Of a DNA stretch of 64,000 nucleotides, positions 11,111 to 43,664 are shown piece after piece. The stretch is from Pavona decussata (taxonomy: Eukaryota). The notes under the pieces are model-generated. The model had not been told where the DNA came from. It did no database searches and saw nothing but the letters and a program-made list of their open reading frames with translations. Both the position numbers and the translations under genes were made by a program. The stretch spans positions 868,001 through 932,000 of the forward strand of contig CDRNST010000049.1 in assembly GCA_977016875.1 (NCBI GenBank), in the 5' to 3' direction. Position 1 is the stretch's first letter. Each line of letters starts with the position of its first letter.

Positions 11111-13342
11111 TCATTCAAATATTTGAATTCGATGATTTTTATTATCAGACACAACAATTTGGCTATTACTTAAAACTGCAACGGACCAAGGATAATTCAA
11201 TTGTCCTAAGTTACTACCGTTTGTCGCAAACTTACCATTTAATTCAAAGACTTGAATTCTATGATTACTCTGATCACACACCATCAGTAGTCCTGACTTA
11301 GTCACTGACAAAAAACGTGGACGATTAAACTCCCCATCCCCGCACCCCTGCTTACCAAACTTATACTTATACTCCCCCTTTTTACTGAAAACGTTTATGC
11401 TATGATCATCAGCATCTGACACTATGAGATATTCATCACACTGAACACAGTGGACAGGACAACTGAAAGAACCAGGCCCACCTATCTTCATGAGGAAATT
11501 GCCATCAGGGGAAAAGATCTTAATCAGTTTGTTACCTGCATCAGCAACAATAATATTACCCTGACTATCCAAGGATAAACCCCAAGGACAAGAGAGCTGA
11601 CTATCAAGGCTTCCTTTCCCACCAAACATACCCATATACCTACCCTCCCCATTGAAAATATGCACTCTATTGTTAGAATGGTCTGCTACAAAAATCTTTC
11701 CATCCTTATCAAAGGCTATTCCAAGTGGAAAGTAAAATTCTCCCAGGTCGTTACCTTGGCGACCAAAGGATCTTATGAAATCGCCATTAATGTTGAAGAT
11801 TTGAACCCTGTGGTTGGACTGGTCAGCTACTGCTATTTCATCCCTGTTACTCACTGCTACCCCGACAGGAGACTTAAACATTCCAACATCCGAACCTTGT
11901 TCTCCAAAAGATAAAACAGGTTTGACATGAAATGGTTTTACTAGTACATTAAAAGGACTGCCACAAACATATTCCCCGTTTACCTTAACTGACAATTTAC
12001 AGCTACCTTGAACTCTAGGAGAATAGCTAATGTTGTAGCTTCCATCTTTGTTATCACCTATTTGCTCTTTTGTCACGAATTCTTGCCCATGCTCGTCTCT
12101 CAACTCTACTGTTACATTGTCACGCTTATTATAACACTGTCTTTTGTTAGCGTTTCTTGTGGTCAAATTGAATTGAGCTTCACGCCCAACAGTTCCTTCT
12201 ATGATTCCTTTGCCTTCAGCTAGACAATCGCTTGCTTTTGCTTGATACAGGTTTTCCAGGAAGCCAATTTCTTCGCCGTTGACAATGTGCAGTATCTTGT
12301 GATTTTCCACAAAAGCTAAAGCTGGAAGACCTTCAGGGTCACGGGAATTGTGCTTGGTTTGTTTGACTTCCTCAAGAATTGTTCCCAATGACTTTTTCAG
12401 CTGAATGACTTCAGCGTTTGTACTTCGTGTAAACAAATTTTCAACTTTTTCTAGCGATAATTCGATCTTCTTTATTTGTTCTTCAATCTCAGCCTTTTTC
12501 TTTGTTAGATTTTCAAGCAACTTCCCTGTTTCGTTTTCAACCTCAGAGATAATATTCTGCTTCTTCGCTTGAATTGTTTTGATCACGTTATCAGCAAACG
12601 TTTCGACATCTCTTATCAGGTTTCCGCTTTGTTGAACCAGTTTAGCGTAGTCTTCATCAAGCTGAGAAACAAGATTCATCTTTTCCTGCAACTTTTGTCT
12701 TTGTTCTTCTATAAGAGCTTTCATCTCGATCTTTTGGAGCTCGGCTTCTTCTTCGATTAATTTCAAAGTATGGCCATTGTGATCCAACATGACGCAGGCT
12801 GGGCAAACTGCTGAATCGCATTTTTTGCAGACGTACTCAAGCTCTTTTTTCTGATGTCCCTGTATTGGACAAAACACGGGTCGCTTCAATACATCCTCAT
12901 AGTTCTTGTCTTGGAATTCTTTCACCGCAAGAATACGATGATCTTTGTTGTTTCGCATGATGTTGTGTGCAATTAAGCACTGTTCACAGTAAAATATGCA
13001 ACAATGAAAGCAGTACGAAGCCTCGGAGCTTTTCTTGTCGCAGTTTCCTCACGTTACTTGGGTTGTGTTGCATTCTTTTATGGCCAGCACATCAATCAAG
13101 CCGTTCAGATAAAAGCTGGTCGGAAGATCCTTCAGATCGCCACTTGCAGGCACTCTGCTAAGGGTTTGGCACTTCGGACATCTGAATGCATTTTGACCGC
13201 CACTCGACTGATGCCAGTGTTTCAAACAATGCAGACAGAAACTGTGTAAACAGGAAAGCTGTCTGGGATTCTTAAATAAGTCCGAACACACCAGACAAGA
13301 CACTTCTTCACGGAGATTGTAAAGCAATGTTCGGATATCCAT
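11111..13342 (-). pseudogene. TRIM-NHL E3 ligase copy 1 (TRIM71/TRIM2/3-type architecture), intronless, with an in-frame TGA at 13049-13051
   Basis: RING (CLVC..CLHSFCLHC..CPKC), B-boxes, coiled coil, filamin, six NHL repeats. TGT(Cys)->TGA relative to paralogs, plus a 4-codon in-frame deletion between NHL repeats 5 and 6. Confidence 0.85.
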
Positions 13343-13622
13343 GTTGTTTTCACACACAAACGAGGAGTGACCTTGGGCAGTCTGCACAACACAATGGAGT
13401 CTTGTGATTTTCTATCTTTAGCTTTTCTAGGAATCTTAAGCGTATGAACCAATCACAGAACGCTTTTGTAAGAGGTTGTTGACTTTTTTGTTCCCAAGGA
13501 ATGTACTCCTTGTGTGTTCAAAAGACACGTAGTTCAGTCAAAACAGACAAGCGACCAATGCAACGAGGTCAATTAAGTAAAAATTATTGTATGTAAATCC
13601 TTTTTTACGAGGATAATTATCA

Positions 13623-13839
13623 TTATTAAAAACTGCATCATTGTATAATGCAATTCGAGCGATTTGATTGGCTTAGCGACCATGGTATATGAGCAATTAT
13701 ACCATGGCCGAGAAATGGCGACCATTAAATTGCCTTCTGGTCGTTCTTGCACAGCGAAATCAGTAAGATCTAGCAATATTTCTCGGTTGTTTTTAATAAA
13801 ACAATTATTCCACTTGCGCTTGTTGGATATGAGATGATT

Positions 13840-13897
<58 letters not shown>

Positions 13898-13917
13898 GCT
13901 CGTGGAATAATTGTTAA
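13623..13917. mobile_element. Short non-autonomous repeat with a long terminal hairpin
   Basis: Palindrome aacaattattcca...tggaataattgtt (~13800-13915). Empty site in the paralog at ~34755. Confidence 0.7.
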
Positions 13918-18436: not shown

Positions 18437-20293
18437 TTAAACTAAAATCTCGGGAAGCTAACCTTCGGTGATGGTCTAAAATCGTTAGGCTTGGCATGCA
18501 TTCCCGCGGGAAACGGGCCGGAAACGGGAAACGAGCTCTTGGGGACGTGAGAGCGTTGTTGAAGTTGAGGCTGATCACATACACTGATTAGGTCAAAATC
18601 AACATGTCACACTATAATAAGAGGTACCTCCGCACATACACACAATCGCCGGTGTACTTGCAAACTAGCCACGATACCAAATGGATTCTTCCTGGCTGCC
18701 TGCTAAGTGGATTTGTACGGCTTTGCATATTAGCTCCTTACGCCACACACGACAAAGATTACGTGAAGGCCCCGCGTGCAATATTGGACTTGACTGCGTG
18801 CGACAACTGCACTTTCTCCTGCGCTCAGCTGCTACGAAGACAAGAAGGTCTTGTCAGGAACTAAGTTAAACTCAAAAATGCTGATAGATTACGGGTAGTC
18901 CCGTAATTTTCCTTAGAATAATGATCCAAATAACGAGGCAAGCGAAATACGCGAGTGCCCGCTTAAACTGCCTTCTGACTCTTCGCAGGAGATAATTTTC
19001 ACGCGCGCGCGTGTTTCGCTTGCTTTACTAACAAAAGTAATGGACTACTCGAAGTCTGGAAATTCAAAATCGACTTGACTGCGCGCAACAACTGGGGCAC
19101 TCTTTCCTGCGACACGAAGACAAGAATGTCTTGTCACGAACTAAGTTAAACTCGACAATGCTGATAGACTACGAGAAGTCCCTTAGTTTTCTTGGAATAA
19201 CAAGGCGAGCAAAATACGCGAGAGCGCGAAAACTGCCTTTTGCCTCCTCGTGGAGGAGAATTTTCACGAGCGCGTCTTTCACTTCCTTTATTATCCCTAA
19301 CAAAAGTAGTCCACTACTCGTAGTCCAGCAATGCATACTCGGTGTTTCTAACAAAGAACATTTCTTTCAACCCAAACTTTAAAATATTTCTTCACTTCCT
19401 TCACTCTGCTGGTATTACAGCGCAACGAACTCAACCGGGGCAACCCAACATTGATCAGACAATCACAAGTCACGTTTATAACAAAGGAGTCTGGCTTTGG
19501 TTGTTTGTAAACCAATAAAAAACGAGAACATGTCTTTAAATTTCAAAGCGACGGTTTTATCGGTGGCCCCGGTTGAGTTCACTACGCTGTAAGAGTCCGT
19601 AAAACGTGATTATTTAGATTTTGTTAACAAATGTTACATCTCATGGCTCTGTGTCCGATTAAATATCTCTGACTGGAATATACCCAACTAGAATTGCATA
19701 TATTTGCCTCCTAACGAGGTGGAGATTGGAAATGCTACAAGTAGTTGGATATATATATTTGGACTAGTTACACATTTTTCATCATCATCTTTCAGGATTA
19801 CAACATGCATGAATTTACTAGAATTTAAAACCCGGCTTTTAACAAACAGTAGTACACTCTGGCGTAATGTGATGATGTTTCTTGTATCTTCGTCGTTTGG
19901 AAATCGCAGCGATTGCACTACTTCAACGGTTCTCCCTAATTCAGGTACACGTTAGAACAAACAACGTAGGGTGTACTTTAATTCTTCTGAACAAAAATTG
20001 GTTGGCCGCTTAATTCATATTCACCGTTGTATTTGGTTTGTATTAACACGCACATGGGGACAAGATAATGGACGATTTTTTCCACATATAATTTATTAAA
20101 GGTAAACACTTGTTTCCATAGCTCGAACCGTCCTTCCCCTTTTCAAATTTTCATTCTCGAAGAATAAATCACCCTTAGACATTTACTTAAAATTACATAA
20201 AGTGATGCTTAGGTTAGCATAGATAGCAACCGTTTCTGTCTCAAGCTTCACTTCATGTAATCTGAAGTAAACGTCCACGTGCAATTTATACCC

Positions 20294-21158
20294 AACAACA
20301 ACAACAACAAGCTTTATTTGCATGACTATAACAAATACAGTATTGCAAAAGCTATTCATAGCTAATTATTAATTCGTTAACTAATTCTTAAGATAACTTA
20401 AAATAAAATAAAATAAAATAAAGTAAATGAAGTCTTTGCTTATTTTAAACTATTCATACAGTAGAAGTAATCATTCCGGAGAGAAGTTTATCTCTCAATT
20501 GGAAGCACGAGGAAACAAATGAAATTAATTGAGTGTTTATAAAATAGTCTGTTGAGTTCATTATATGCAATAGTAAAGTTTCTTTTACTAATAGTCGTGT
20601 AAATGGAAGGCTAGGTTCTATTTTAGAAAAGAACATATCTCTTAAAGAAGAGTAACTTGGGCAATCTAATAAAAAATGAATTTCGTCTTCAATGGTTTTA
20701 CGGTTGCAAACATTACACATCCTTTCATTACGGGGTATGTTGTCGTATCTTCCTGTTTCAATCAAAAGCTTGTGGCTGCTTATTCTTAGTTTCACTAATG
20801 CTTTCCTAGAAGCGTTTTTCCTTGTGAGATCTAGGTAAGCAGAGGGGCCAAAAGTTTCTTTGATTGTGTAATAAAAGCTGAGTTTTTGTGAGTGTTGAAG
20901 GGTTGGGTGCCAATAAGAGATATATTTCTTTCTCATAAGATCTATATATTGTTTGAAGTTATTTTCATTCAATGTGTAATAATTAAAGTTGGGGAAATTA
21001 TAGTATTCACTCATCTTCATGAGACTGGAGTAAAAGCCAGTTTGACCGCTATAATGAAGGTCAACAGATATTCTTAGGGATTGTTTTGCTATAGAATGTT
21101 CATCCTTTCCTTGGAGGTAGTGTACGTAATTAAGTATCTTTTTATTTATGTCAACGAC
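20294..21158 (-). mobile_element. 5'-truncated non-LTR retrotransposon (RTE-X-like ORF2 C-terminus)
   Basis: LRISSHKLLIETGRY..CNVC..IEDEIHFLLDC zinc-knuckle region, AATAAA plus (TTG)n tail, taccc direct repeat. Empty site at ~39280. Confidence 0.85.
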
Positions 21159-22004
21159 TACCCCGTGTATGAAAATTTGAAGAGGGGGAGGGCGGTTTAA
21201 GCTATGGTAGCAAGTGTTTACCATTTTCCTTCATTGTTTTGGAAGCCATTTTGTAAAACGTAACAAAGCATTTTGATGTGTAAGTACGCTGCTCATAAGT
21301 ACCGCAGTTGAGAAAATAGAAAGTGAATTTTTGAGATTTTTTTTAATCGTATTTCTTAACAGTTACGAACCGGAAGCGTCTGAAAGGCGTGGCCAAAAAA
21401 AAAAAATAAATGGAATGAATGTAAAGTTAGAAAATCACAGGTCCAAATTTAACTTAAGCTTCCATCTGAAAAGCGGGGAGTGGGATAGGGAGGGGGAGGA
21501 TATGACGTGGGTTTTTATACAGGACGGGAAAAATTACCGTACATTATAGCATTGAAGGTAGTTGATCGAATTCTTGGGCTTCTGCTTACAACTCCGACAA
21601 TCTAGTTTTCACTGGATCATAAGCGTTGGAGCCATAAGCGAAATCGGAAGAAAATGGAACCGTTCTGATTCTTCCGACTCCGATTCCGTCCAGCTTTCAA
21701 CTCCGACTCCGACTCCGACTCCGACTCCGATTTTCGATTTTCACTAGGTCGGAAGCGCTCACACGACTCCGACTCCGACTCCCACTCCATCGCCAGTGAA
21801 AACCTGCCTTGAAAAAGGTGTTGGCAACCTGTGATTACACAGAATTCACAGAAAATGAAAGGATAACCTGCCGAATTAGGAGGTGTTCTCTTTTACGGAT
21901 CGCAACCACGGACATTTTATCTCCTTTTTTGGAGTTTCTAGTATGAATATGAGAATGATGTATTATTCAGTTAGTGGCACAGGCATACTCGGAAAAAATC
22001 CGAG

Positions 22005-24882: not shown

Positions 24883-25749
24883 TCACTCAAATATTTGAAT
24901 TCTATGATTACCGTTTTCACAAACAACAATTTGATTGTTATTTAGAAATGCTGCAGACCACGGTTTATTCAGTTCTCCTACGTTGCTGCCACTTGTCCCA
25001 AACTTGCCAACAAACGTTCCATTTAATTTAAAGACTTGTATTCTGTGATTATCTTCATCACACACCATTAGTAGACCTGATTTAGTCACAAGCAAATGAC
25101 GGGGATAATTAAACTCCCCATCCCCTCCCCCCCGCTTACCAAACTTATACTTATATTCCCCCTGCCTACTGAAAATTTTTATGCTATGATCATCACAGTC
25201 TGACACTATGAGATATTCATCACATTGAACACAGTCTACAGGATAACTAAAAGAACGAGGCCCACCTATCTTTCTTAGAAAATTGCCATCAGGGGAAAAG
25301 ATCTTAATCGTTTTGTTACCTTTATCAGCAACAATAATATTACCCTGACTGTCCAAGGATAAACCCATAGGATAACAGAGTTGACTATGAAGACTTCCTT
25401 CCCTACCAAACATACCCATGTACCTACCCTCCCTATTGAAAATCTGCACTCTATGGTTATTTTGGTCTGCTACAAAAATCTTTCCATTCTCATGAAAGGC
25501 TATTCCAGAAGGATATTCAAATTCCCCCTGATTGCTACCTTGGCGACCAAAAGATCTTACAAAATTTCCATTGCTGTTGAAGATTTGAACCTTGTGGATG
25601 GACGTAATTGCTATTTCATTCCTGCTACTCACTGCCACCCCACGAGGATACTGAAACATTCCGACATCCAAACCTTCTTTTCCAAAAGTTAAAACAGGTT
25701 TGACAAGAATACGGTGATCTTGTCCAGGAATCCTTAAGTCGTGAGCCAA
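24883..25749 (-). CDS. TRIM-NHL copy 2: NHL-only truncated derivative (open frame; first in-frame ATG at 25659), possibly a pseudogene
   Basis: Six NHL repeats without stops. B-box-region peptide DHRIL is fused directly to VKPVL. RING, B-boxes, coiled coil and filamin are deleted. Confidence 0.7.
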   Translation of the reverse strand: MAHDLRIPGQDHRILVKPVLTFGKEGLDVGMFQYPRGVAVSSRNEIAITSIHKVQIFNSNGNFVRSFGRQGSNQGEFEYPSGIAFHENGKIFVADQNNHRVQIFNREGRYMGMFGREGSLHSQLCYPMGLSLDSQGNIIVADKGNKTIKIFSPDGNFLRKIGGPRSFSYPVDCVQCDEYLIVSDCDDHSIKIFSRQGEYKYKFGKRGGGDGEFNYPRHLLVTKSGLLMVCDEDNHRIQVFKLNGTFVGKFGTSGSNVGELNKPWSAAFLNNNQIVVCENGNHRIQIFE

Positions 25750-25967
25750 TTACGTAACGATGCTAGCTGTTTCGTTCTGGTTTCTGATTCCCGCCGGAAA
25801 TGTTCTCCTGTTGAGCGCAGTTTATAGCTTGATAAGAGTTGGCAACTGAACACAGACAAAACTGAAATAAAAGGAGTTTAAGAAAACAAACTTTACGGTA
25901 AAGCTGAATTACAAAAGTCGTAAATATAAACAATGAAAAGTCAGGAACGGCGAATTACTAATTTTTT

Positions 25968-26140
25968 NNNNNNNNNNNNNNNNNNNNNNNNNNNNNNNNN
26001 NNNNNNNNNNNNNNNNNNNNNNNNNNNNNNNNNNNNNNNNNNNNNNNNNNNNNNNNNNNNNNNNNNNNNNNNNNNNNNNNNNNNNNNNNNNNNNNNNNNN
26101 NNNNNNNNNNNNNNNNNNNNNNNNNNNNNNNNNNNNNNNN
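25968..26140. other. Assembly gap (N run)
   Basis: 173 N. Confidence 1.
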
Positions 26141-27867
26141 TTTAAGATAATTAAAATTATCTTAAACTAATATCTTTGGGAAGCTATAACCTTCGGTGAT
26201 GGTCGAAAATCGTTAGGCTTGGTATGCATTCCCGAGGGAAACGGGCCGGAAACGGGAAACGAGCTCTAGAGGACGAAAGAGCGTTGTTGAAGTTGGGGCT
26301 GATCACAGATTACATCAAAGTCAACACGTTACACTATAATAAGAGGTACCTCCACACATATTCACAATCGCTGGCGTACTTGCAACTAGCGTCTATACCA
26401 AATGGATTCTTTGTGGGGATATACAATCGAAGAGCTTCCTGGCTGCCTGCTAAGTGGTTTTGTACGGCTTTACATATTAGCTCCTTACACCACACACGAC
26501 AAAGATTACGTGAAGGCCCCGCGTATAAACTTGGACTTGATTGCGCGCGACAACTGCGCTCTTTCCTGCGCTCCGCCGCCACGAAGACAAGAATGTTTTG
26601 TCAGGAACTAAGTTAAACTCAACAATGTCGACCAACATGTCGACCGTTACCATCGATCGGGGCCCCCTATAAGACACAAAATTCCCTTAATTTTCCTTGG
26701 AATAATGATCCAAATAACAAGGCGAGTGAAATACACGAGCGCCTTCTGCCTCCTCGCAGGAGACAATTTTCACGCGCGCGTGTGTCTCGCTTGCTTTACT
26801 AACAAAAGTAATGGTTACTAGTCTTGAAGTCTAGAAATTCATAATCGACATGACTGCGCGCAACAACTGCACTCTTACCTGCGCCACGAAAACAAGTATG
26901 TCTTGCCAGGAACTAAGTTAAACTCGGCAATGCTGATAGGCTACGAGAAGACGTCCCTTAATTTTCTCGGGATAACAAGGCAAGCAAAATAGGCGAGAGC
27001 GCGAAAACTGACTGCCTTTTACCTCCTCGTGGAAGACAATTTTCACGCGCGCGAGTTTCGCTTTCTATATTATCCCTAACAGAAGTAGTCGACTACTCGT
27101 AGACTAGAAATGCATACTCGGTGTTTCTAAATAGGAGACATTTCTTTCAACCCAAACTTTAAATTATTTCTTCACTCCCTTGAATCTGCTGGTGTTAAGA
27201 CTCCGCAAATCGTGATTTTTAGATTTTGTTAACAAATGTTACATCTCATCCTAGTTAATTAAAGGCAATGGTTATGAAACCTGGCAAAATTTTTTGTTTG
27301 CCTTTTTGGCCTTAACCCTGCATAAACAACAATGTTCAAAACAAAACTTTAATAAATATTAAAATAACTAACCGAAATGAATAACAGAAACTGAAACAGT
27401 AATAAATAGTTGAAAGTTCAGTTGCTTTCAAAAAAATTGTTCATTTTAGCAGTAATAAACGGTATACATGTACGGTACGGTGAATGTTCATGAGTTTATC
27501 TATTCGACGTCGATGACTTCAGTGTCACTTGCGTCAATTATCAAGCTATCTGGTGCTGCATCCTCAACGTCGGATTCTGTGATCCCGTCGATAGGATCTT
27601 TGAACTCTGAAGGCGCTGTAATAATATTAGAATAGGGGCGCTTTTTAACAAAAACACATTCGAAGGGGGGCGCTTATTTGGAAGGGGGCGCTTATTGGAA
27701 GGAGGGCGCTAATTCGAATCATTACGGTACATATAAATGTCTCCTGACGAGGTGGAGAGTGGAAATGCTACAAGTCGTTGGATATGCATTTTGCATTAGT
27801 TACACATTTTTCATCGTCATCTTTCAGGATAACAACATGCATGAATTTACTGGAATTTAACGAATAA

Positions 27868-27994: not shown

Positions 27995-28030
<36 letters not shown>

Positions 28031-29862: not shown

Positions 29863-32213
29863 ACGAATAATAGTACACTCTGGCGTAATGTGATGATGTA
29901 TCTTGTATCTTCGTCGTTTGGAAATCGCAGCAATTCCACTACTTACAACGGCTCTCCCTGATTCAGGTACACATTAGAGCAAACAAGGTAGTGTGTAGTT
30001 TAATTTTTCTGAACAAAAATTGGTTGACCGTTTAATTTATATTCACTGTTGTATGGGGTTTGCATTGAGGAGCACGTGGCGAAAGGAAATGGACGATTTT
30101 TTTGCCACATATAATTTATTGAAGGTAAACACTTATTTCCATAGCTCAAACTGCCCTTCCATTTTCAAATTCACGATTCAAATTCTTCTCTCTCACGGTT
30201 TAACTCGTCCTCCATCAGAAATGTACCGTGCAAGCAGTCACTATCTGAGAAGGTTGGAGAAGCCATTCATTGTTCAGTGCGGGTCCCAGTTCAAAAAAGT
30301 ACAAAATCTTCCTACACGTGGCAAAGAGTTCTCAACTTTTGTTTACTTTCAAACTCAATACGAGTGTGCGCGATACGATAATTATTTTAAAATGGTGCCA
30401 AAAAGATAACCAATGATTTATTTGGTATTTTTGCTAATGTGTTCAAGAAAGCCTTACCGATGAGCCGTTAATTTTGGCCAACGATCGATCTTCCTCAACT
30501 GAGTACATGAGCCGAGTTTAACGTCCGAACTTGAGTCAGACCACCCTGCTAGCCGAGGCTTTCTTGTCTTTCTCCATCTTTGAGGAGTCAAGAAAGGCTC
30601 TGCTCGCAGGGTAGTTCCAGGACCGCAGATATTTTATTAGCCTTCAACGGGCTTAGTCGAGTGATTTTAGACGTTTTCATCCTGAGCTGGCGAAACCAAA
30701 CCCAGTAACAGGTAAGTTTTCCTTAATTTCCATGGGAAAAATTAATCCGCCTTGGAACTTAGTAGATTCCAAAAAGTTTCCTGGTCAATTTTACTCTTTT
30801 CTGGTCTAAAATTTAATTTCTTCGGTGTATTTTGCCGCCGAAGGAAAACTTCTCAAGCCCATATCATTCCCTATTAAAAGATCTTTGTGTCCCGTTCTTC
30901 TTTTCTGTCCCTTTTCAATCTGATTGTCACCTGCAATCAAATAGACATTTTGTGCTCGACAAAAACGAGAACTGTGGGGAGACTAATGAACAAACATCTG
31001 TAAATTGCGAATGCGTTGAGCATCTGGTCCTCAGATTCACAATTCTGAAACATTTCGTTCCTTGGAAAACGCAGGAAATGTCATTTACGAGCACACAAAG
31101 TTACTGGTAAAGTATGCCCACGTACCCTCCTAGAAGATAGTGCTTTTTGCGCTCGTATTCATCGTGCGTACATTGCGAAAACTCCCCCCTCCTCCCTCTC
31201 ACTCACGGTCTGTAGCTGCCTGGAAAATTAAGTGACGCTGAAGACTACTGCTTCCAATCATCTCACAACCCGACCCACAAGAGAACAAGAGAACAGTCTT
31301 TTGTATCTCTTACCAATATATTTCAGAATAGATTTAGATGACACAGTTCTGATTTTAAACAGAATTTTATTTTTTGTCGCAATCAACTAGTTTTACAGTG
31401 TTTATATATTGTTAAAGACTATATTGTTAGTGCCATTGTATAGCACTTTGAGTTACAGTTAACCAAAACACATCATGATTTTTCGAGTACATGAATGCTT
31501 AAGATTGGTAGTTTAAATATATTTAATTAGGTAAATATTCTATGAAACCGGACATATTGTTCATGGCAAGGATACACTTTGAGCGGCGAACCAGCCAAGA
31601 CGCTAAGAACATGATATAACAAAATAATAGCAAGAAATACCATGCTTATCGATATCACGGCGTTTCTTACAAGAAAATATAAAACATGCAAAAATGGGCA
31701 ATGAAGTACTTTAGTTCAATTTCCTTAATCTTCAACTTTCAAGCCCAGAATTCAGTTCAAAGCAGATTGTCCCTTATCCAGGTAAAAAAAAAAAGAAAGA
31801 AATCGAACTTTTTGGTTCCTTTAGTGATATAAAGCGCTTCAAATTACTTATAAACATTATTTCATTTGTTTTGTACTAGTCAAGAGAAAATAATCGATTG
31901 CAGAATTCTTCGTTGAAAAGAATTTTCATTTAAACTAAACTGAAACGAGACTAATCCTACTCGGATTATATTTTTGAGTTCTGCCTTATCTTATTTCAAC
32001 AAACTGACTTCTATCAACTATACAAAAGTTACAACTATTTTTTTCTTTCTTGATTTTTTAAAAAGGTTTCGATTCAAAAGGAAAAACGTACAACGGTAAA
32101 AAATTTAACAAGTCCCTGACTCTTTAAAATATAATGCACATGTTGAAATCAAGCTTAAAATCAAAGTAACACGATTTTATCGTTCTTTTCCATATTTGTG
32201 AAGAGGGCAATTT

Positions 32214-34451
32214 TTACTCAAATACTTGAATTCGATGATTACCGTTATCAGACACAACAATTTGGTTATTACTTAGAACTGCTACAGACCACGGACAACT
32301 AAATTCTCCCAAGTTTCTCCCCTGTATTCCAAACTTGCCAACAAACGTGCCATTCAGTTCAAAGACTTGTATTCTGTGATTAGCCCGATCACACACCATC
32401 AGTAGTCCTGACTTAGTCACTGACAAAAACTGTGGGGCAGAAAACTCTCCATCCCCTCTCCCCTGCTTACCAAACTCATACTTATACTCTCCCTCCCTAC
32501 TGAAGACTTTTATTTTGTGATCATCCTTGTCTGACACTATGAGATATTCATCATACTGAACACAATGGGCAGGACAACTTAAAGAGCCAGGCCCACCTAT
32601 CTTCATTAGAAAATTGCCGTCAGGGGTAAAGATCTTAATCAGTTTGTTACCTGAATCGGCAACAATAATATTACCCTCAAAATCCAAGGATAAACCCCAA
32701 GGCTTGATGAGTTGACTATCAAGGCTTCCTTTCCCACCAAACATATTCATGTACCCACCCTCCCCATTGAAAATCTGCACTCTATGGTTACTATAGTCTG
32801 CTACAAAAATCTTCCCATCCTTATCAAAGGCTATTCCATAAGGACATATAAATCCCCCCTGATTGCGACCTCTGCAACCAAAAGATCTTATAAAATTGCC
32901 ACCACTGTTGAAGATTTGAACTTTGTCGTTGGACGTAATCGCTATTTCATCCCTGCTACTCACTGCCACCCCACGAGGATTCTGAAACATTCCAATATCC
33001 GAACCTTCTTTTCCAAAAGTTAAAACAGGTTTGACAAGAAATGGTTTTACTAGCACAGTGAATGGACTATCACAAACATGTTTCTCGTTTACCTTAATTG
33101 ACAAATAACATCTTCCTGGAACTGTGGGAGAATAACAAATGGTGTAGCTTCCATCTTTGTTATCATCTATTTGCACTTTTGTCACGCATTCTCGCCCACG
33201 CTCGTCTCTCAACTCTATCGTTACATTGTCACGCTTTTTATAACACTGTCTTTTGTTAGCGTTTCTTGTGGTCAAATTAATTTGAGATTCCCGCCCAACA
33301 GTTCCTTCTATGATTCCTTTGCCTTCAGCAAGACAATCGCTTCCTTTTGCTTGATGCAGGTTTTCCAAACAACCAATTTCTTCGCTGTTGACAATGTCCA
33401 GCATCTTGTGATTTTCCACGAAAGCTAAAGCTGGAAGACCTTCAGAGTCACGGGAAATCTGCTTGGTTTGTTTGACTTCTTCAAGAATTGTTCCCAATGA
33501 CTTTCTCAGATGAATGACTTCAGCGTTTGTACTTCGTGTCAATAAATTTTCCACTTTTTCCAGCGATAATTGGATCTTCTTTATTTCTTCTTCAATCTCA
33601 GTCTTTTTCTTTGTTAGGTTTTCAAGCGACATCCTTGTTTCGTTTTCCACCTGAGAGATAATATTCTGCTTCTTTGCTTCAATTGTTTTCATCAAGTTAT
33701 CAACAAACGTTTCGACATCTCTTATAAGGTTTTCGCTTTGTTGAACCAATTTAGCATAGTCTTCATCAAGCTGAGAAACTAGATTCATCTTTTCCTGCAA
33801 GTTTTGTCTTTGCTCCTCTATGAGAGCTTTCATCTCGATCTTTTGGACCTCGGCTTCTTCTTCGATTAATTTCAAAGTATGGCCATTGTGATCCAACATG
33901 ACGCAGCTTGCGCAAACTGCTGTATCGCATTTTTTGCAGACGTACTCAAGCTCTTTTTTCTGGTGTCCCTGTACTGGACAAAACACGGGTCGCTTCAATA
34001 CATCCTCATAGTCCTTGTCTTGGAATTCTTTCACCGCAAGAATACGGTGATCTTTGTTGTTTCGCATCATGTTGTGTCCAATTAGGCACTGTTCACAGTA
34101 AAATATGCAACACTGAAAGCAGTACGAAGCTTCGGAGCTTTTCTTGTCGCAGTTTCCACACGTTACTTGGGTTGTGTTGCATTCTTTTATGGCCAGCACA
34201 TCGATCAAGCCGTTCAGATAAAAGCTGGTCGGTAGATCCCTCAGATCGCCGCTTGCAGGCACTCTGCTAAGGGTTTGGCACTTCGGACATCTGAACGTAT
34301 TTTGACCGCCACTCGTCTGATGCCAGTGTTTCAAACAATGCAGACAGAAACTGTGTAAACAGGGAAGCTGTCTGGGATCCTTAAATAAGTCCGAACACAC
34401 CGGACAAGACACTTCTTCGCGGAGATTGTAAAACAATGTTCGGATATCCAT
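32214..34451 (-). CDS. TRIM-NHL E3 ubiquitin ligase copy 3 (TRIM71/TRIM2/3-type architecture), intact, intronless, 745 aa
   Basis: Single ORF from MDIRTLF: RING CPVC..CLHSFCLHC..CPKC, B-box1, B-box2, coiled coil, filamin (DNKDGSY), six NHL repeats ending NHRIQVFE. Confidence 0.95.
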   Translation of the reverse strand: MDIRTLFYNLREEVSCPVCSDLFKDPRQLPCLHSFCLHCLKHWHQTSGGQNTFRCPKCQTLSRVPASGDLRDLPTSFYLNGLIDVLAIKECNTTQVTCGNCDKKSSEASYCFQCCIFYCEQCLIGHNMMRNNKDHRILAVKEFQDKDYEDVLKRPVFCPVQGHQKKELEYVCKKCDTAVCASCVMLDHNGHTLKLIEEEAEVQKIEMKALIEEQRQNLQEKMNLVSQLDEDYAKLVQQSENLIRDVETFVDNLMKTIEAKKQNIISQVENETRMSLENLTKKKTEIEEEIKKIQLSLEKVENLLTRSTNAEVIHLRKSLGTILEEVKQTKQISRDSEGLPALAFVENHKMLDIVNSEEIGCLENLHQAKGSDCLAEGKGIIEGTVGRESQINLTTRNANKRQCYKKRDNVTIELRDERGRECVTKVQIDDNKDGSYTICYSPTVPGRCYLSIKVNEKHVCDSPFTVLVKPFLVKPVLTFGKEGSDIGMFQNPRGVAVSSRDEIAITSNDKVQIFNSGGNFIRSFGCRGRNQGGFICPYGIAFDKDGKIFVADYSNHRVQIFNGEGGYMNMFGGKGSLDSQLIKPWGLSLDFEGNIIVADSGNKLIKIFTPDGNFLMKIGGPGSLSCPAHCVQYDEYLIVSDKDDHKIKVFSREGEYKYEFGKQGRGDGEFSAPQFLSVTKSGLLMVCDRANHRIQVFELNGTFVGKFGIQGRNLGEFSCPWSVAVLSNNQIVVSDNGNHRIQVFE

Positions 34452-34549
34452 GTTGTTTTCGCACACAAACGAGGAGTGACCTTGTGGCAGTCTACACAAT
34501 GGAGTCTTGTGACTTTCTATCTTTAGCTTTTCTAGGGATCTTAAGCGTA

Positions 34550-34990
34550 TGAACCAATCACAGAACGCTTTTGTAAGAGGTTGTTGACTGTCTCGTTCTG
34601 GTTTCTGATTCCAATGAATGTACTCCTGGTGTGTTAAAATTTTGGTGATGACACTAAGACGAGTAGATCAGTCAAAACAGACAAGCGACTATAATACAAC
34701 AAGGTCAATTAAGTCAACATTATTTTATGTAAATCCTTTTTTACGAAGATTATTATCAGTAACGCATCGGTTCTAATGGAACAGATGCGGCGGAGCATTG
34801 TTTGAAAAACTTTAACTCTATTCAGTCTTAGAAGTTCTCGGCACTCTATGTCGCCACGCAATTTAAAGTCGTGAGATTTTTCAAGCTTAGCTTGTCTAGG
34901 AATCCTTTTTAGCTAGGTGCGTGAGCCAATTACATTACGATGCTAACTGTTTCGTTCTGGTTTCTGATTCCCGACGGAAATGTTCTCCTG
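34550..34990 (-). promoter_or_regulatory. Duplicated conserved upstream module (CCAAT + gtttcgttctggtttctgattcc...ggaa), proximal and distal copies
   Basis: CCAAT at 34554 and ~34926, followed by the same motif. Homologs at ~13449, 25746, ~43758 and ~44360. Function is inferred from position and conservation only. Confidence 0.45.
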
Positions 34991-35647
34991 TTGAGCGCAG
35001 TTGATGGCTTGATAAGTGTTGGCAACTTAGTACAGACAAAACTGAAATAAAAGGAGTTTAAGAAAACAAACTTAAAAGTGTAAAGCCACTTATTGGGTCA
35101 GCAACGGTGAAACACTAATTTTAAGCTAACCTTCGGTGATGGTCTAAAGTCGTTAGGCTTGGCATTAGTTCCCGCGGAAAACGGGCCGGAAATGGGAAAC
35201 GAGCTCTAGAGGACGTAAGAGCGTTGTTGGAGTTGGGGCTGATCACAGATTAGGTCAAAGTCAACATGTTACACCATAATAAGAGGCCCCTCCACACAAT
35301 CGCCGGCGTACTTGCCCGTAGCGTTGATACCAAATGGATTATTTGTGGGGATCTACAATCGAAGAGCTACCTGGCTGCCTGCTAAGTGTTTTTAAACAGC
35401 GTTACATATTCAGCCTCCTTACGCCACACACGACAAAGATTACACGAAGGCCCCGCGTATAAACTTGGACTTGACCACGCGCAACAAATACACTCTTTCC
35501 TGCACTCCGCCGCCACGAAGACAAGACTGTCTTGTCAGGAACTAAGTTAAACTCAGCAATGCTGATAGATTACGGGTAGTCCCTTAATGTTCCTAGGAAT
35601 AATGATCCAGATAACAAGGCGAGTTAAATACGCGAGCGCCCGCTTAA

Positions 35648-36259
35648 GACGAACATTTTAGGTAGGGGGGTAGGGGGGTAGGGGGGAGCAGAGACGGGGG
35701 AGCATTTTGCTCAAATTATTTTTAATTTTTTTCATTGTTATATTAACATGTTAAAAGGCGCGTTTTAACTTGTATCTACTTCAGATGGATATATCTGCCA
35801 CTGTAAATTCGATTTAAATGTTAAGAAAGGTATGTTCTTGTCCCCCTTTAAGGTGGGGCTCTACCTGAATTTGAGTGAAATTTGAAGAGTTTTAAGAATG
35901 GATAGAAGAAAGAAAATGATTTTTGGAACACTAACAGACAGTCGACAACCACGCAAGAGCACCCCAGGTTGCTAGTGGACTAACTTGGTATCCGTCTATT
36001 AATTATTAACTACAAATTCTAATTTTAAAACTTCACTAAATCTTCAACATTCCTTATTTCTTTTAATTTTACCAATCCTTCAAGAAAAATTATTTCCTTC
36101 CAAATATACCTAAAAATCACCCAAAAATTCATAAAACACCCCAAATCATTAATTTGTGCTATGAATGGAGGGTTTTTGTATTGCTTGAAATGCAAACAAG
36201 ATATTTTCATTTGACCGATTTTAAGCGGCGTGAAAATGGCTTTTAGGTGAACCCCCACC
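35648..36259. mobile_element. Two adjacent TTAA-bounded MITEs (35648-35847, 35852-36259), Kolobok-like
   Basis: TTAA|ggtggggctctacct ... aggtgaacccccacc|TTAA. Empty site gcttaaactgcc at ~18961 and ~36897. Confidence 0.7.
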
Positions 36260-37649
36260 TTAAACTGCCTTCTGCCTCCCCCGCAGGAGACAATTTTCAC
36301 GCGCGCGCGTGTTTCGCTTGCTTTACTAACAAAAGTAATGATAATCTCGTACCCAGATCTCCCACGGTCGACATTCCCGAACCGACTGAGATCAGGGTAC
36401 GAGATTAAAGTAATGGTTACTTGAAGTCTAGAAATTCATAATCGACGTGACTGCACGGAACAACTGCACTCTTTCCTGCGTCACGAAGACAAGAATTTCT
36501 TTTCAGGGACTAAGTTAAACTCGACAATGCTGATAGACTACGAGAAGTCCCTTAGTTTTCTCGGGATAACAAGGCAAGCAAAATACACGAGAGAGCGAAA
36601 ATTGCCTTTTACCTCCTCGTGGAAGACAATTTTCACTCGTGTCTTTCGCTTTCTTTATTATCCTTAACAAAAGAATTCGACTACTCGTAGTTTAGAAATA
36701 AATACTCGGTGTTTCTTCGGAAGAGACATTTCTTTCAACCCAAACTTTAAAATCTTTAAAATATTTCCTCAATTCCTTTACTCTGCTGCCAGGAACTAAG
36801 TTAAACTCAACAATGCTGATAGATTACGAGAAGTTCCTTAATTTTCCAAGGAATAATGATATGAAAAACAAGGGGAGCGAAACACGCGAGCCCCCGCTTA
36901 AACTGCCTTCTGCCTCCTCGAAGGAGACAATTTTCACGCGCTTGTGTTTCGCTTGCTTTACTAACAAAATTAACGCATTACTCGAAGTCTAGAAATTCAT
37001 AATCGACTAGACCGCGCAAAAACTGCACTCTTTCCTGCGACACGAACACAAGAATGTCTTTTCAGGAACTAAGTTAAACTCGATAATGCTGAAAACTACG
37101 AGAAGTCCCTTAGTTTTCTCGGGATAACAAGGCGAGCAAAATACGCGAGAGCGCGAAAACTGCCTTTTACCTCCTCGTAGAAGAGAATTTTCACGCGCGC
37201 GCGTCTTTCGTTTTCTTTATTATCTTTAACAAAGGAAGTCGACTACTCGTAGTCTAGAAATACATACTCGGTGTTTCTAAGGAAGAGATATTCTTTCAAC
37301 CCAAACTTTGAAATATTTCTTTACTTCCTTGGCTCTGCTGGTGTTAAGACTCCGCAAAACATGATTATTAAGATTTTGTTAACAAATGTTACATCTCATG
37401 ATAGTTAATTAAAAGCAATGGTTATGAAACCTGAGAAACTTCTTTGTTACATGTCTTTTTTTTTTTGTTTTTTTTGTTTTTTTGTTTTTTCTTTTTTTGG
37501 CCTTGACCCTGCATAAGCAACAATTGAATTTGGAACGTTTTGGAGCAACTGACCAATCGAAATGTTTTTGTTAAGATATTCAACTATGGTGTGAACGTTA
37601 AAACAAAGGATTGTGCAGGGTCGCAGCCCTTCCAACATAAATTGCAGTA

Positions 37650-38575: not shown

Positions 38576-40887
38576 TTGTTGTTTTCTTGGCAAGGTTTCC
38601 TCACCAGTCCCTCAATTGACTATGATCTCATGTCCGATTAAATATCTCCGACTGGAATATACCCAACTCTAGTTACATATATATGTCTCCTGACGAGGTG
38701 GAGAGTGGAAATGCTACAAGTAGTTGGATATATTTGGACTAGTTACACATTTTTCATCGTCATCTTTCAAGATTACAACTAGCATGAATTTACTAGAATT
38801 TAAAACCCGGCTTTTAACAAATAGTAGTACACTCTGGCGTAATGTAATGCTGTATCTTGCATCTTCGTCGTTTGGAAATCGCAGCGATTGCACTACTTCA
38901 ACGGTTCTCCCTTACTCAGGTACACATTAGAACAAGGTAGTGTGTAGTTTAATTCTTCTGAACAAAAATTGGTTGGCAGTTTAATTCATATTCACCGTTC
39001 GGTATAGGGTTTGTGTTAAGGACCACGTGGGGACAAGGTATTGGAAGATTTTTGCCACATCTGATTTATTGAAGTTACTGACACTTGTTTCAATAGCTCA
39101 AACCGCCCTCCCCCTTTAAGAATTTTCATATACGAAGTATAAATCACACCTGGACATTTACCTAAAATTACGTGAAGTGAAGCTTAGGTTAGCATAAATA
39201 GCACCCCGATTAGAAACTTCATTTTCTATTTTAACCTTCACTTCATGTAATTTTAAGTAAATGTCCACGAGCAATTTATACTTCGTGTATGAAAATTTGA
39301 AGAGGGGGAGGGTGGTTTAAGTTATGATAACAAGTGTTTACCGTTCTCCTTCGTCGTTTTGGAAGCCATTTTGTAAAATGTAACGAGGCATTTTAATGTG
39401 TAACTACGCTGCTCATACGCCCCGCAGCTGAGAAATAGAAAGTGAAGTGTTGAGATTTTTTTAAATCGTATTTCTTAACTTTTACGAACCGGAAGCGTCT
39501 GAAAGGCGTGGCCACAAAAAAATGGATGGAATGGACGTAAAGTTAGAAAATCAAAGGTACAAATTAAACTGAACCTTAGCTTCCTTCTGAAAAGCGGAGA
39601 GAGAGGAGGGGAGGGGAGGATATCACGTGGGTACTTGTACAGGATGGGAAAAAATTACCGTACATGATAACATTGTATGTAGTTGATCGAAACGAGGATG
39701 AACTCAGCTGCCCCTGAGGCTTGTGTAATACAATCTCTGAAGTAGCCACACAACTTTTTTAGAAAACAATCTGGGACCAGATTGACTTAGCCCTCCTAAG
39801 ATCCATCGGTTCTGCGAGCCGGTCAACAATAGCAAACGTGGCTAGATCGTCGCCGGCATCTTCCAAAGGAGAAGCGCTGGTGTTGTAATCTTCACTATCT
39901 GTTAGTCCGTCAATGAATTCCTCAGCTGCCGAGGATAGCTCGCGTTCTTTTCAAGATTTCGAACTACCGTTTTCATTAAACCCTGGATCCCTTTCTTGTT
40001 TCAACATTGACCTAAAAAAGTTTTTTTTTTTGAGAAAAATTCGACCTTTCTTCCCTATCAGTAACCTTAAGTAGGGTCTTAAGAGTATCTGAGGTATTGT
40101 TACTTAACATTATGCTGTTCTTTGTGTCTTTAAAGACGATTTTTCGAGACACAGTACTAAGGGTTCATCCTAACTTATGAGGGCTTCGAGAATCTGGAGC
40201 CTTGGACAGATTGTTCTGTTTATAGCCTCCCTTGCAGACGCTCTCTTGGCTCGTTACGCAATCTTCCCTCCTCGTTGAGGAGGGAAGATTGCATGACGAG
40301 GGAAGATTGCGTGACGAGCCAAAAGAGCGTCTGCTAGGGAGGCTATTCTGTTGGATTAAGCACTCCATTTAAAATTCTCTTACCTCTGCTTGGCGAAAAC
40401 TTGTAAATTGCCACTTGCTTCTAACAAGACAACAGTAAAACCGACACTGGACATTTCTCACCACCGAATATTTCCAGAAAAGATGCAGATAACACAGTTC
40501 TGATTTTATACAAAAGCTATTCATTTATTTATTGATTTGTTTTACGTAATCAACTACAGTTTTAGAGCGTTTATAAATTTTCAGAGACTATAGTCTATCA
40601 TAACATTTCTTCAAGCGACTTGTTTACACTCCCTTTCAATAAAATACAAAATGATCTATCAAATAGGCAAAGAAGTAAGTTACATTTTCTTAATTTAATA
40701 ATATCAGGCCCTGGATGTTCAAACGCAGATTGACATTAAAACAGATTACAACGTGAAGCTAACTTTTTGGTTCCTTGATGTAAAGCGTTTCATATAACCT
40801 CTGAACATTAGTTCATCTGTTTCCTATTACGCAAGACTAAAACTATCAACAAAAGAACCATCGGAATTTTTATTCAAACTAAACTGA

Positions 40888-41183
40888 GAAGATGGATCAG
40901 AGAGGTATTGCTCACTGATATAATTAGTTCTTACGTTTGATAGATTTAAGTGAACCCTTAGTCATCATTGATTTCTCTGGGAGGGAGCCTAAGTTTTACA
41001 AGCCCTATGGTTTTTATTAGGTTCCCTCGTCGCTTCTTTTCTATCTCTTGTACTTTAAACACTGCAACTTTATAATCATTTGTAACCATTGTAATCATTG
41101 TAATCATTGCAATTTATTAATCATTGTAACTGTGACTTAAATGTGTGTGGCAAATAAACTAAATAAAAAAATAATAATAATAA
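40888..41183 (+). mobile_element. LINE 3'-UTR fragment with (TAA)n tail
   Basis: Stem-loop gagggagcctaa / ttaggttccctc, AATAAA, (taa)n tail, TSD taaactga. Absent from paralogous flanks. Confidence 0.7.
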
Positions 41184-41415
41184 TAAACTGAAGTCAAACG
41201 AAGGGCCAATCCTGAGCCCAGATATTCGTTCTGCCTTAATACTTCTGCCCTCAGTATATTTTTCTTCTTCCGCTTTTTAAAACTGTTTGAGTCAAAAGGA
41301 ACAACTTTCGATGGTAAAATGAATGGATATGTTAACGGAGAAGGGCTCCAATCAAGTCTAAAATCAAAGTAAAAACATTTTACTGTTCTTCTTTATATTC
41401 GTGAAGAGGAAATTT

Positions 41416-43664
41416 TCACTCGAATATTTGAATGCGATGATTTCCCCATTCACACACAACAATTTGGTTATTACTAAGGACGGCAACAGAGAACGGGCAA
41501 TTAAATTCTCCTAACTTGTTTCCCTGTGTCCCAAACTTAGCAACAAATTTACCATTCAATTCAAAGACTTGTATTCTATGATTATCCGTATCACACACCA
41601 TCAGTAGTCCTGACTTAGTCACTGACAAAAAACGGGGAGTTTTAAACTTCCCGTCCCCTCCCCCCTGCTTTCCAAACTTATACTTATACTCCCCCTCCCT
41701 ACTGAAGACTTTTACTGGTTGTGATCATTACCACCGTCTGACACTATGAGATATTCATCACACTGAACACAGTGGACTGGATAAGAAAAAGCACCAGGCC
41801 CACCTACCTTCATTAGAAAATTGCCATCGGGAGAAAAGATCTTAATCAATTTGTTACCTGAATCAGCAACAATAATATTACCCTGACTATCCAGAGATAA
41901 ACCCAAAGGATAGATGAGTTGACTATCAAGGGTCCCTTCCCCACCAAACATGCCCATGTACCTACCCTCCCCACTGAAAATCTGTACTCTATGGTTATAA
42001 TAGTCTGCAACAAAAATCTTTTCATCGTTACCATAGGCTATTCCAAAAGGATGTTTAAATTCCCCCTGATTGCTACCTTGGCGACCAAAGGATCTTATGA
42101 AATCGCCATTACTGTTGAAGATATGAACCATGTGGTTTAACTGGTCAGCTACTGTTATTTCATCCCTGTTACTCACTGCCACCCCGACAGGATACTGAAA
42201 CATTCCAACATCCGAACCTTGTTTACCAAAAGACAAAACAGGTTTGACATGAAATGGTTTTACTAGAACAGTAAAAGGACTATCACAAACATATTCCCCG
42301 TTTACCTTAACTGATAATTGACAGCTACCTTGAACTTTAGGAGAATAGCTAATGGTGTAGCTCCCATCTTTGTTATCATCTATTTGCACTTTTGTCACAC
42401 ATTCTCGCGCACGCTCGTCTCTCATATCTGCCGTTACATTGTCACGCTTATTATAACACTGTATTTTGTTCGCGTTTCTTGTTGTCAAATTGAATTGAGA
42501 TTCCCGTCCGATAGTTCCTTCTATGATCCCTTTGCCTTCAGCAAGACAATCGCTTCCTTTTGCTTGATGCAGGTTTTCCAAACAACCAATTTCTTCGCCG
42601 TTGACAATGTCCAGTATCTTGTGATTTTCAACGAAAACTAAAGCTGAAAGACCTTCAGGGTCACGAGAAATGTGCTTGGTTTGTTTGACTTCCTCAAGAA
42701 TTGTTACCAATGACTTTTTCAGCTGAATGACTTCAGCGTTTGTACTTCGTGTCAGCAAATTTTCAACTGTTTCTAGCGATAATTCGATCGTCTTTATTTC
42801 ATCTTCAATCTCAGTCCTTTTCTTTGTTAAGCTTTCAAGCGACTTCCTTGTTTCATTTTCCACCGCATAGATAATATCCTGTTTCTTCGCTTGAATTGTT
42901 TTGATTAAGTTATCAGCAAACGTTTCGACATCTCTTATCAGATTTTCGCTTTGCTGAACCAGTTTAACACAGTCTTCATCAAGTTGTATAACTAGTTTCA
43001 TCTTTTCCTGTAAGTTTTGTCTTTGTTCCTGTATGAGAGCTGTCATCTCGTTTTTTTGGACCTCGGCTTCATCTTGGATTAATTTCAAAGTATGACCAGT
43101 GTGATCCAACATGACGCAGGCTGGACAAACAGTTGTTTCGCATTTCTTGCACACATACTCCAGCTCTTTTTTCTCATGTCCCTGCAACGGACAAAACATG
43201 GGTCGTTTTAATACATCCTCATAGTCCTTGTCTTGGAATTCTTTCACAGCAAGAATACGATGATCTTTGTTGTTTCGCATCATGTTGTGTCCAATTAGGC
43301 ACTGTTCACAGTAAAATATGCAACATTGAAAGCAGTACGAAGCCTCGGAGCTTTTCTTGTCGCAGTTTCCACACGTTACTTGGGTTGTGTTGCATTCTTT
43401 TATGGCCAGCACATCGATCATGCCGTTCAGATAAAAGCTGGTCGGAAGATCCTTCAGATCGCCGCTTGCAGGCACTCTGCTAAGGGTTTGGCATATCGGA
43501 CATCTGAATGCATTTTGACCGCCACTCGTCTGATGCCAGTGTTTCAAACAGTGCAGACAGAAACTGTGTAAACAGGGAAGCTGTCTGGGATCCTTAAATA
43601 TATCCTTACACACGGAACAAGACACTTCTTCGCGGAGATTGTCAAGCAACGTTTGGATATCCAT
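41416..43664 (-). pseudogene. TRIM-NHL copy 4, frameshifted in NHL repeat 4 (~41718)
   Basis: The ORF from MDIQTLL stops at 41712. The remaining NHL sequence VKVFSREGEYKYKFG...NHRIQIFE continues in another frame to 41416. Confidence 0.85.

Follow-up and report, generated by a model that had tools for sequence, protein, structure and literature searches.

A tandem array of single-exon TRIM-NHL genes in the coral Pavona decussata points to diversification of the NHL top face

Do the tandemly repeated TRIM-NHL genes of a coral combine a constant ubiquitin-ligase half with a recognition surface that changes from copy to copy? We investigated this question in a window of 64,000 nucleotides from Pavona decussata (assembly GCA_977016875.1, contig CDRNST010000049.1, positions 868,001 to 932,000 of the forward strand), in which tblastn with an intact open reading frame (ORF) and the ORF list located four TRIM-NHL copies, all on the minus strand, here called c1 to c4 (Table 1). 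An earlier note on this DNA had proposed that they form an array of intronless ligases with a hypervariable NHL binding face. As the best explanation of the whole, to which we assign a probability of about 0.7, the copies belong to a single-exon TRIM-NHL family with a conserved ligase half and a diversified top face of the NHL propeller, which would serve diversified ligand recognition.

The intact copy, c3, carries in one open frame a RING finger, a B-box2, a filamin repeat and an NHL propeller. Pfam matched the RING in c4 as well, and in c1, where the RING lies upstream of the ORF scanned with Pfam, the C3HC4 pattern is visible in the alignment. Amino acids 98–135 of c3 form a putative B-box1-like Cys/His stretch, which received no Pfam call, and the alignment reveals about 170 charged, heptad-like residues between B-box2 and the filamin repeat as a putative coiled-coil region. 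Pfam matched no SPRY domain in the window copies, and their C-terminal domain is NHL. The c3 protein has an identical entry in the protein collection (P0001), and its closest named proteins are the 'TRIM45-like' proteins of the stony coral Oculina patagonica, with 65% identity. With respect to the coding sequence, the term intronless was well chosen, as c3 and most of the scored paralogs consist of a single open frame.

Comparison of the window copies gave mean pairwise amino acid identities of 89% for the RING, 96% for the linker with B-box1, 88% for B-box2, 83% for the coiled coil, 81% for the filamin repeat and 77% for the NHL domain. The RING and B-box regions, which the earlier note had called almost identical, are thus strongly conserved, but the wording slightly overstates a conservation of 89–96%. 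The note had further held that the x positions of the recurring F/L-x-x-P-x and D-x-x-N motifs vary on a preserved NHL scaffold, and every motif string that it quoted for the four copies is present in our alignment. Indeed, the 28 x positions show 31% identity among the copies, against 82% at the other 249 NHL positions, and 25 of the 28 are variable, as compared with 81 of the 249 others (Fisher p 6e-9).

To measure selection, we prepared a codon alignment of 20 close paralogs, comprising the four window copies and 16 copies from C519 and C45, with the stops and the frameshift masked. The site models were fitted with our own GY94/F3x4 code, whose M0 likelihood equals that of IQ-TREE (-6325.98), while later trees were built with FastTree and their branch lengths rescaled in the same code. 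As a result, the M1a versus M2a comparison for the NHL domain of the 20 paralogs gave a likelihood-ratio test statistic (LRT) of 196 (p 2e-43), with an M0 omega (nonsynonymous to synonymous rate ratio, dN/dS) of 0.51 and 10.7% of the sites at omega 4.1. The M7 versus M8 comparison, which had been suggested as a check on the idea, gave an LRT of 253 (p 1e-55), M8a versus M8 gave 192 (p 5e-44), and with the 14 intact genes only the M1a versus M2a LRT was still 152 (p 1e-33). For the RING, B-box and coiled-coil (RBCC) module plus filamin of 19 paralogs, in contrast, the same comparison detected no selected class (LRT 1.5, p 0.47), and the omega of 0.15–0.48 by domain indicates purifying selection, as expected of the constant ubiquitination module that had been postulated. 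In the separate array on C91, the NHL domains of 14 genes gave an LRT of 126 (p 4e-28) with 9.5% of the sites at omega 5.2, and the N-terminal half gave 9.7 (p 0.008). Nine selected sites are common to both arrays (Fisher p 1e-9). The standard site tests for a diversifying NHL surface are therefore strongly positive in two independent arrays. Furthermore, when separate trees were used for three two-blade segments, the signal was kept in five of six segments, and recombination between blades is therefore not its cause.

The 28 positions singled out beforehand were also examined in paralogs outside the window, with the synonymous rate left free. Omega at these positions was 1.93 (p 0.004) in C519/C45 and 1.62 (p 0.052) in C91, against 0.35 and 0.54, respectively, at the remaining NHL positions in the same test, in line with the elevated dN/dS that had been anticipated there.

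We located the selected sites on an AlphaFold2 model of c3 amino acids 465–745 (mean predicted local distance difference test score, pLDDT, 94.8), which comprises six blades of four strands each (24 strands), blade 6 being closed by the N-terminal strand. A Foldseek comparison of the model gave a template-modelling (TM) score of 0.92, a root-mean-square deviation of 1.5–1.8 A and 36–39% identity to the NHL domains of Thin, TRIM71/LIN-41, TRIM2 and TRIM3, those of Brat and Mei-P26 being more distant. The F-x-x-P-x motif lies at the end of the D-to-A loop and leads into strand A, and the B-to-C loop consists of D-x-x-N. Loops of both kinds are found on what is called the top face of a beta-propeller, the surface by which NHL domains bind RNA (PMC9070667; PMC5908797). 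By their site posteriors, the hypervariable sites of c3 are amino acids 482, 493, 527, 535, 536, 553, 583, 585, 600, 642, 643, 663, 689, 710, 719, 721, 736 and 737. In the first clade, 15 of the 18 selected sites fall in D-to-A or B-to-C loops and three at strand edges, and in C91 the loops hold 12 of 13, whereas none of the 51 bottom-loop residues is selected in either. The variable residues are thus predicted by the model to cluster on one face, as the earlier note had supposed. They fall into three periodic classes, namely the x residues around the Pro of F-x-x-P-x, those of D-x-x-N, and the residue two places after the FG at the end of strand D. Overall, hypervariable codons, whose omega is 1 or higher, make up about a tenth of the NHL domain and lie in the D-to-A and B-to-C loops or at strand edges.

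The segments of the gene differ in their synonymous divergence (dS). For the RING plus B-box1, dS was 0.12–0.13 within arrays and 0.13 between them, for B-box2 plus coiled coil 0.17–0.25 and 0.54, and for the NHL domain 0.18–0.32 and 0.28. A long branch parts the window copies (contig C49) from the C519 copies in the N-terminal tree, and the NHL tree shows no such split. From the differing dS and trees, the gene segments therefore have different histories: RING/B-box1 is homogenised across arrays, whereas B-box2 and the coiled coil are array-specific. Since the near-identity of RING/B-box1 is partly a matter of low synonymous divergence, it points to gene conversion as well as constraint. The picture of the RING/B-box region as a constant module accordingly holds as to purifying selection (dN/dS 0.15–0.23), but a part of its constancy is due to homogenisation (dS 0.12–0.13 versus 0.28–0.54).

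Several points weigh against the reading of the top face as diversified by selection. In both arrays, the hypervariable codons, which in c3 fall within amino acids 490–737 (32241–32984), have 2–3 times the synonymous rate of the remaining NHL codons, and cross-validated sites, chosen in one array and tested in the other, have an omega of 1.77 (p 0.03) and 1.51 (p 0.17; both tested against omega = 1) when given their own synonymous rate. A tree-free, pooled pairwise dN/dS at the cross-validated sites is 1.74 for the window copies and 0.97 in the 20-copy clade, pairwise values at the hypervariable sites being near saturation (nonsynonymous differences, pN, 0.45–0.48) and hence uninformative on omega above 1. 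Segment exchange between paralogs can inflate site tests, the branch lengths were fixed up to a scale factor, and the clustering on one face was derived from strand topology and from homology to solved complexes. Moreover, three of the four window copies are dead, and the RNA evidence given below consists of assembled contigs from runs whose RNA label is a guess. The headline omega of 4–5 is inflated by the locally high substitution rate. A fair statement is that protein-level change at the hypervariable positions is 4–5 times faster than elsewhere in the domain and somewhat above the neutral rate. Possible sources of the raised synonymous rate are local hypermutability, short conversion patches and selected multi-nucleotide replacements of codons.

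The raised synonymous rate would also suit a neutral history, in which the top-face loops are merely unconstrained (omega = 1) in redundant duplicates and contain mutation or conversion hot spots, with no repertoire involved. So would an omega of only 1.5–1.8 with the synonymous rate freed, together with the p of 0.17 in one array, the pooled ratio of 0.97, the mosaic segment histories and the pseudogenes that make up three of the four local copies. We nevertheless consider such a history improbable. The M8a/M8 and M1a/M2a nulls, which include a class with omega = 1, are rejected, and rejection persists when gamma rate variation is added to both M1a and M2a, a change that much improves the fit and lowers the LRT to 20.5 (p 4e-5) and 35.7 (p 2e-8). 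The omega of 1.93 was obtained at sites fixed a priori, in unseen paralogs, the signal persists with intact genes only, and most family members have kept long open frames. In addition, Trp, Tyr, Gln, Cys and Arg are over-represented at the selected sites, and an excess of Trp, Tyr and Arg would not be expected of unconstrained codons. From one paralog to another, the net charge of the selected sites varies between -2 and +6, and each signature is unique.

Diversification of the top face can be compared with the contacts known from LIN-41. The RNA stem-loop is contacted in zebrafish LIN-41 by R564, R581, R611, K628, D629 and Y658 (Kumari et al., PMC5908797). We mapped these residues by hand via the printed human TRIM71 chain, with offsets of 44 between species and 580 from chain index to residue number, with which all six carry the expected residue type. 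Residue mapping to PDB chains by HMMER was set aside, because whole-blade shifts occurred in several of its alignments; we relied solely on the TRIM71 alignment that was in register and on the motif positions. The six contacts correspond to x2 of F-x-x-P in blades 1–3 and to x1/x2 of D-x-x-N in blades 1 and 2. At these six positions c3 has N491, a deletion within the loop, C536, Y553, S554 and K583. Four of the six positions are selected in the first clade, where S554 has a posterior of 0.89, and S554 is selected in C91. The coral family thus varies precisely those positions that determine specificity in LIN-41. The basic pocket of LIN-41 is not kept, its equivalents differing in every paralog, and LIN-41-type RNA binding therefore cannot be assumed.

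The overlap with the LIN-41 contacts, as well as the fact that the closest solved relatives are developmental RNA-binding TRIM-NHL proteins, would also accord with endogenous regulators. According to this alternative, the paralogs act in post-transcriptional control or proteostasis like LIN-41, Brat and TRIM2/3 and have been subfunctionalised to many host mRNAs or proteins, playing no part in defence or symbiosis; developmental regulation is indeed known for a coral gene annotated as TRIM71 (PMC12924552). We regard this as unlikely, because repeated change at identical binding positions in both arrays and rapid gene turnover are more typical of conflict than of lasting host targets, and the residues of the LIN-41 basic pocket are not kept. 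Moreover, a scleractinian-restricted NHL gene of Acropora tenuis with a Ka/Ks (the same rate ratio) above 1 is induced by the uptake of native symbionts (PMC7783167).

A search of the 602-Mb assembly placed the window in a wider context. With the NHL-domain query, 137 matches spread over more than 20 contigs reached E<=1e-30, so that the family comprises at least 137 NHL domains, and with the full-length protein query 60 of 831 first-look candidates were scored. Most matches lie inside single open frames of 650–830 amino acids without stops. About 20 copies form the C519 array, 75–80% identical to c3, and about 20 the C91 array, 62–70% identical to c3, while the arrays on C56, C90, C129 and C183 are 50–59% identical to it. 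The region is thus a small, partly decayed tandem array within a very large lineage-specific family of single-exon TRIM-NHL genes. Tandem duplication enlarges the family, and point mutation, frameshift and internal deletion remove copies from it. The birth-and-death turnover with one of four copies intact, as described in the earlier note, is true locally, but most copies genome-wide are open and turnover is less extreme. Such ordered arrays on many contigs argue against the four copies being assembly artefacts, such as haplotigs or a mis-assembled repeat, and we consider this very improbable indeed. Although the region contains an assembly gap and repeats between the copies, the copies differ by 14–20% in DNA, each has its own lesion, and near-identical contigs of a DNA-like run (X16) span the c3 locus.

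The C91 array is itself regular, with about 20 TRIM-NHL genes at C91:1289909-1602607, all on the plus strand and spaced 10–18 kb apart; all but one of the 14 analysed genes are intact. Their proteins of about 793 amino acids are some 45 residues longer than c3, and the matches break between the filamin repeat and the NHL domain.

Concerning function, each paralog would bind a different ligand, RNA or protein in class, through its top face. A dimer formed through the coiled coil would then bring the RING to the ligand, leading to ubiquitination of the ligand or of a bound partner, and selection from changing targets would keep the repertoire diverse. The likeliest sources of changing targets would be viruses, intracellular microbes or symbionts, and transposons. 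Given the symbiont-induced NHL gene of Acropora and the expanded NHL and B-box orthogroups of merulinid corals (PMC11639872), an immune or symbiosis role is plausible. A more specific proposal, which we put forward only tentatively, is a germline repertoire of stony corals for intracellular recognition, convergent with the SPRY-based TRIM5/finTRIM system, in which more than 100 ligases, each with its own NHL top face, would mark RNA or protein of viruses, symbionts or transposons for restriction or signalling that depends on ubiquitin. Its diversity may be renewed by short conversion patches between paralogs, which would account for the higher synonymous rate at these codons as well.

We also looked for signs of expression. 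In two runs of 132 million letters from one sample, error-free contigs cover 31350–34472, with the 3' flank and the coding region of c3, at a depth of about 10, and the same two runs gave no contig over the 1.2 kb upstream of c3. Since a 0.2-fold genome coverage of DNA would not assemble to a depth of 10, these runs are most likely RNA. Thus c3 is probably transcribed, with a 3' untranslated region (UTR) of at least 0.85 kb, which the contigs suggest rather than prove. The DNA-like run X16 covers the whole c3 locus, and coral metatranscriptomes contain parts of it. An intron in the 5' UTR was considered for a metatranscriptome contig (X4) that joins 34536 to 34914 with six extra letters, and was rejected as the ends are not GT..AG; the join is more likely a paralog or a repeat-length variant, since both of its sides copy the upstream repeat of about 360 bp.

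The DNA upstream of c3 contains a 25-mer that was present upstream of 17 of the 19 close-clade loci checked (L001-L019) and absent upstream of the more distant clades (L020-L030). Most close-clade paralogs have between one and three copies of this 25-mer (GGAATCAGAAACCA[G/A]AACGAAACAG), placed relative to the ATG at about -165, -530 and -870, and it belongs to an upstream unit of about 350 bp that is itself tandemly repeated. The 25-mer contains a AANNGAAA core, which may be compared with IRF-binding sites on grounds of resemblance. Further upstream, 35642–36300 is a highly repeated, probably transcribed element with numerous loose contig ends, where the depth is very high in all runs and reaches about 145,000 in X16 and 17,000 in the coral metatranscriptome X4. 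Related copies lie at 18437–19417 and 26162–27307.

The duplicated unit around c3 extends about 0.5 kb downstream and 0.3 kb upstream of its coding sequence, and over about 3 kb it is 84–86% identical to the c1 unit at 10671–13625 and the c4 unit at 41186–43931 (self-blastn). In c1, the disabling TGA replaces the TGT of c3 that is the first Cys codon of B-box1, and a second change is a 12-nt in-frame deletion near 11237, in blade 6. The frameshift in c4 leads to a premature TAA at 41712–41714, with blades 5–6 still readable in another frame. Together with c2, the array shows three kinds of lesion, namely point mutation, frameshift and internal deletion. The frameshift that killed c4 (41715–41735) lies within the hypervariable B-to-C loop of blade 4, which is also length-variable among paralogs. 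Length changes in B-to-C loops may be a common route to both new specificities and gene death.

The likeness of c2 to the other copies ends sharply at 25709, and the assembly gap begins 258 bp further upstream. In between, 25719–25965 matches c3 34891–35122, which lies 440–670 bp upstream of the c3 ATG, with 93.5% identity over a 154-bp core and weaker matches at both ends. An 18-nt piece in c2 is identical to c3 34054–34037, the KDHRIL codons, and overlaps the start of the NHL part (c3 33040) by a TTCTTG microhomology. Because both junctions match c3 segments in read sequence, c2 is a derivative with two internal deletions. We also considered that the gap might conceal the 5' half of c2 and so account for its truncation. 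This was rejected, as the junctions lie in read sequence and the flanks of the gap are collinear with the DNA upstream of c3, reaching c3 35122 on one side and 35127 on the other. No reading frame spans the gap, and it interrupts no copy.

Table 1. Coordinates of the four TRIM-NHL copies and associated features in the 64,000-nucleotide window.
Feature	Position	Strand	Description	Evidence
c1	11114-13342	-	Full length, disabled by in-frame TGA at 13049-13051	tblastn, alignment
c2	24886-25709	-	NHL-only remnant; RBCC and filamin lost by two internal deletions	tblastn, self-blastn
Upstream-like DNA fused to NHL part of c2	25710-25967	-		Sequence comparison with c3
Assembly gap (N)	25968-26140	.	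Intergenic DNA collinear with region upstream of c3	self-blastn
c3 duplication unit	31719-34761	-	Coding sequence with flanks	self-blastn
c3	32217-34451	-	Intact single-exon TRIM-NHL coding sequence, 745 aa (amino acids); stop codon 32214-32216	ORFs, Pfam
c3 six-blade NHL propeller	32217-33047	-	aa 469-745	Pfam NHL, E 2e-39
c3 filamin/ABP280 repeat	33057-33344	-	aa 370-465	Pfam Filamin, E 6e-17
c3 B-box2	33870-33983	-	aa 157-194	Pfam zf-B_box, E 1e-7
c3 RING finger	34278-34406	-	aa 16-58, C3HC4 pattern	Pfam zf-C3HC4 / zf-RING_UBOX, E 5e-10 to 5e-8
Upstream 25-mer (GGAATCAGAAACCAGAACGAGACAG)	34588-34612	-	161 nt before c3 ATG; second copy 34947-34971	
c4	41419-43664	-	Full length; net +5 nt in blade-4 D-x-x-N (B-to-C) loop	tblastn, alignment

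Repeats and mobile-element remains lie around the copies. Just downstream of c1, 330-bp inverted repeats of 99% identity (8038–8367 and 9636–9965) flank a pair of plus-strand ORFs at 8384–9046 and 9202–9879, the first with a weak RVT_1 match (E 1e-4), and 8038–9965 is probably a retroelement fragment. Between c1 and c2, a minus-strand ORF of 256 amino acids (20454–21224) with a Cys/His-rich tail (CNVC...HFLLDC) and no Pfam match is possibly the C-terminal part of ORF2 of a long interspersed nuclear element. A tandem repeat with a unit of about 1.9 kb, in which 1040–3692 matches 2940–5583 at 95.7%, has related pieces of 300–400 bp at 593–892 and 30270–30682.

Corals are, to our knowledge, without adaptive immunity, and we know of little on how they distinguish viruses, pathogens and algal symbionts inside their cells. 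If the proposed recognition by the top face is true, more than 100 ligases with a constant effector half and a copy-specific face would be a concrete candidate for such intracellular discrimination, and would provide a second, independent case of the TRIM5/finTRIM design on a different fold. For NHL biology, it would mean that the positions fixing RNA specificity in LIN-41 are those that evolution varies when specificity must change. On a practical note, the genes bear the annotation 'TRIM45-like' or 'TRIM71-like', and studies of coral expression can easily mistake them for developmental regulators.

Expansion and rapid change of NHL genes in corals have been touched on before. Orthogroups with NHL repeats and B-boxes are expanded in merulinid corals (PMC11639872), and besides the symbiont-induced gene of Acropora tenuis, a TRIM71-annotated orthogroup has a Ka/Ks of about 1.1 in Montipora/Acropora (PMC9145168). 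These reports gave whole-gene statistics in passing, without loop mapping, array comparison or a contrast of ligase and NHL parts. In the literature searched on corals, other cnidarians and oysters, we found no prior description of site-specific diversification of the NHL top face, its replication between arrays or its overlap with RNA contacts. Tandem TRIM arrays with a conserved RBCC module and a selected recognition domain are known already, from TRIM5 and from the finTRIMs with SPRY.

With RING, B-box, and filamin followed by a six-blade NHL domain, the coral copies share the domain order of the class VII TRIM-NHL proteins TRIM71/LIN-41, TRIM2 and TRIM3, as well as TRIM32/Thin, Brat and Mei-P26. 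The ligand face of Brat and LIN-41 is the top surface, which is likewise the variable face in the coral family. The known class VII proteins are multi-exon. They are single-copy, conserved developmental regulators, whereas the coral has more than 100 single-exon tandem paralogs, which vary most at the positions of the LIN-41 RNA contacts and have not conserved the basic pocket.

In mode of evolution, the array resembles TRIM5/TRIM22 of primates and the finTRIM and bloodthirsty-like genes of teleosts, which form lineage-specific RBCC arrays with a conserved N-terminal module and frequent pseudogenes, and in which positive selection is focused on the loops of the C-terminal recognition domain. 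The coral family likewise shows lineage-specific tandem expansion with pseudogenes, a conserved RBCC module and selection in the ligand-face loops, with an omega of 1.5–1.9 when the synonymous rate is freed. It differs in that an NHL propeller after a filamin repeat takes the place of PRY-SPRY (B30.2), and in its cnidarian host. The coral system is known here from sequence and predicted structure, and the parallel with the TRIM5/finTRIM arrays, which the earlier note had drawn, is a fair description of its evolutionary mode.

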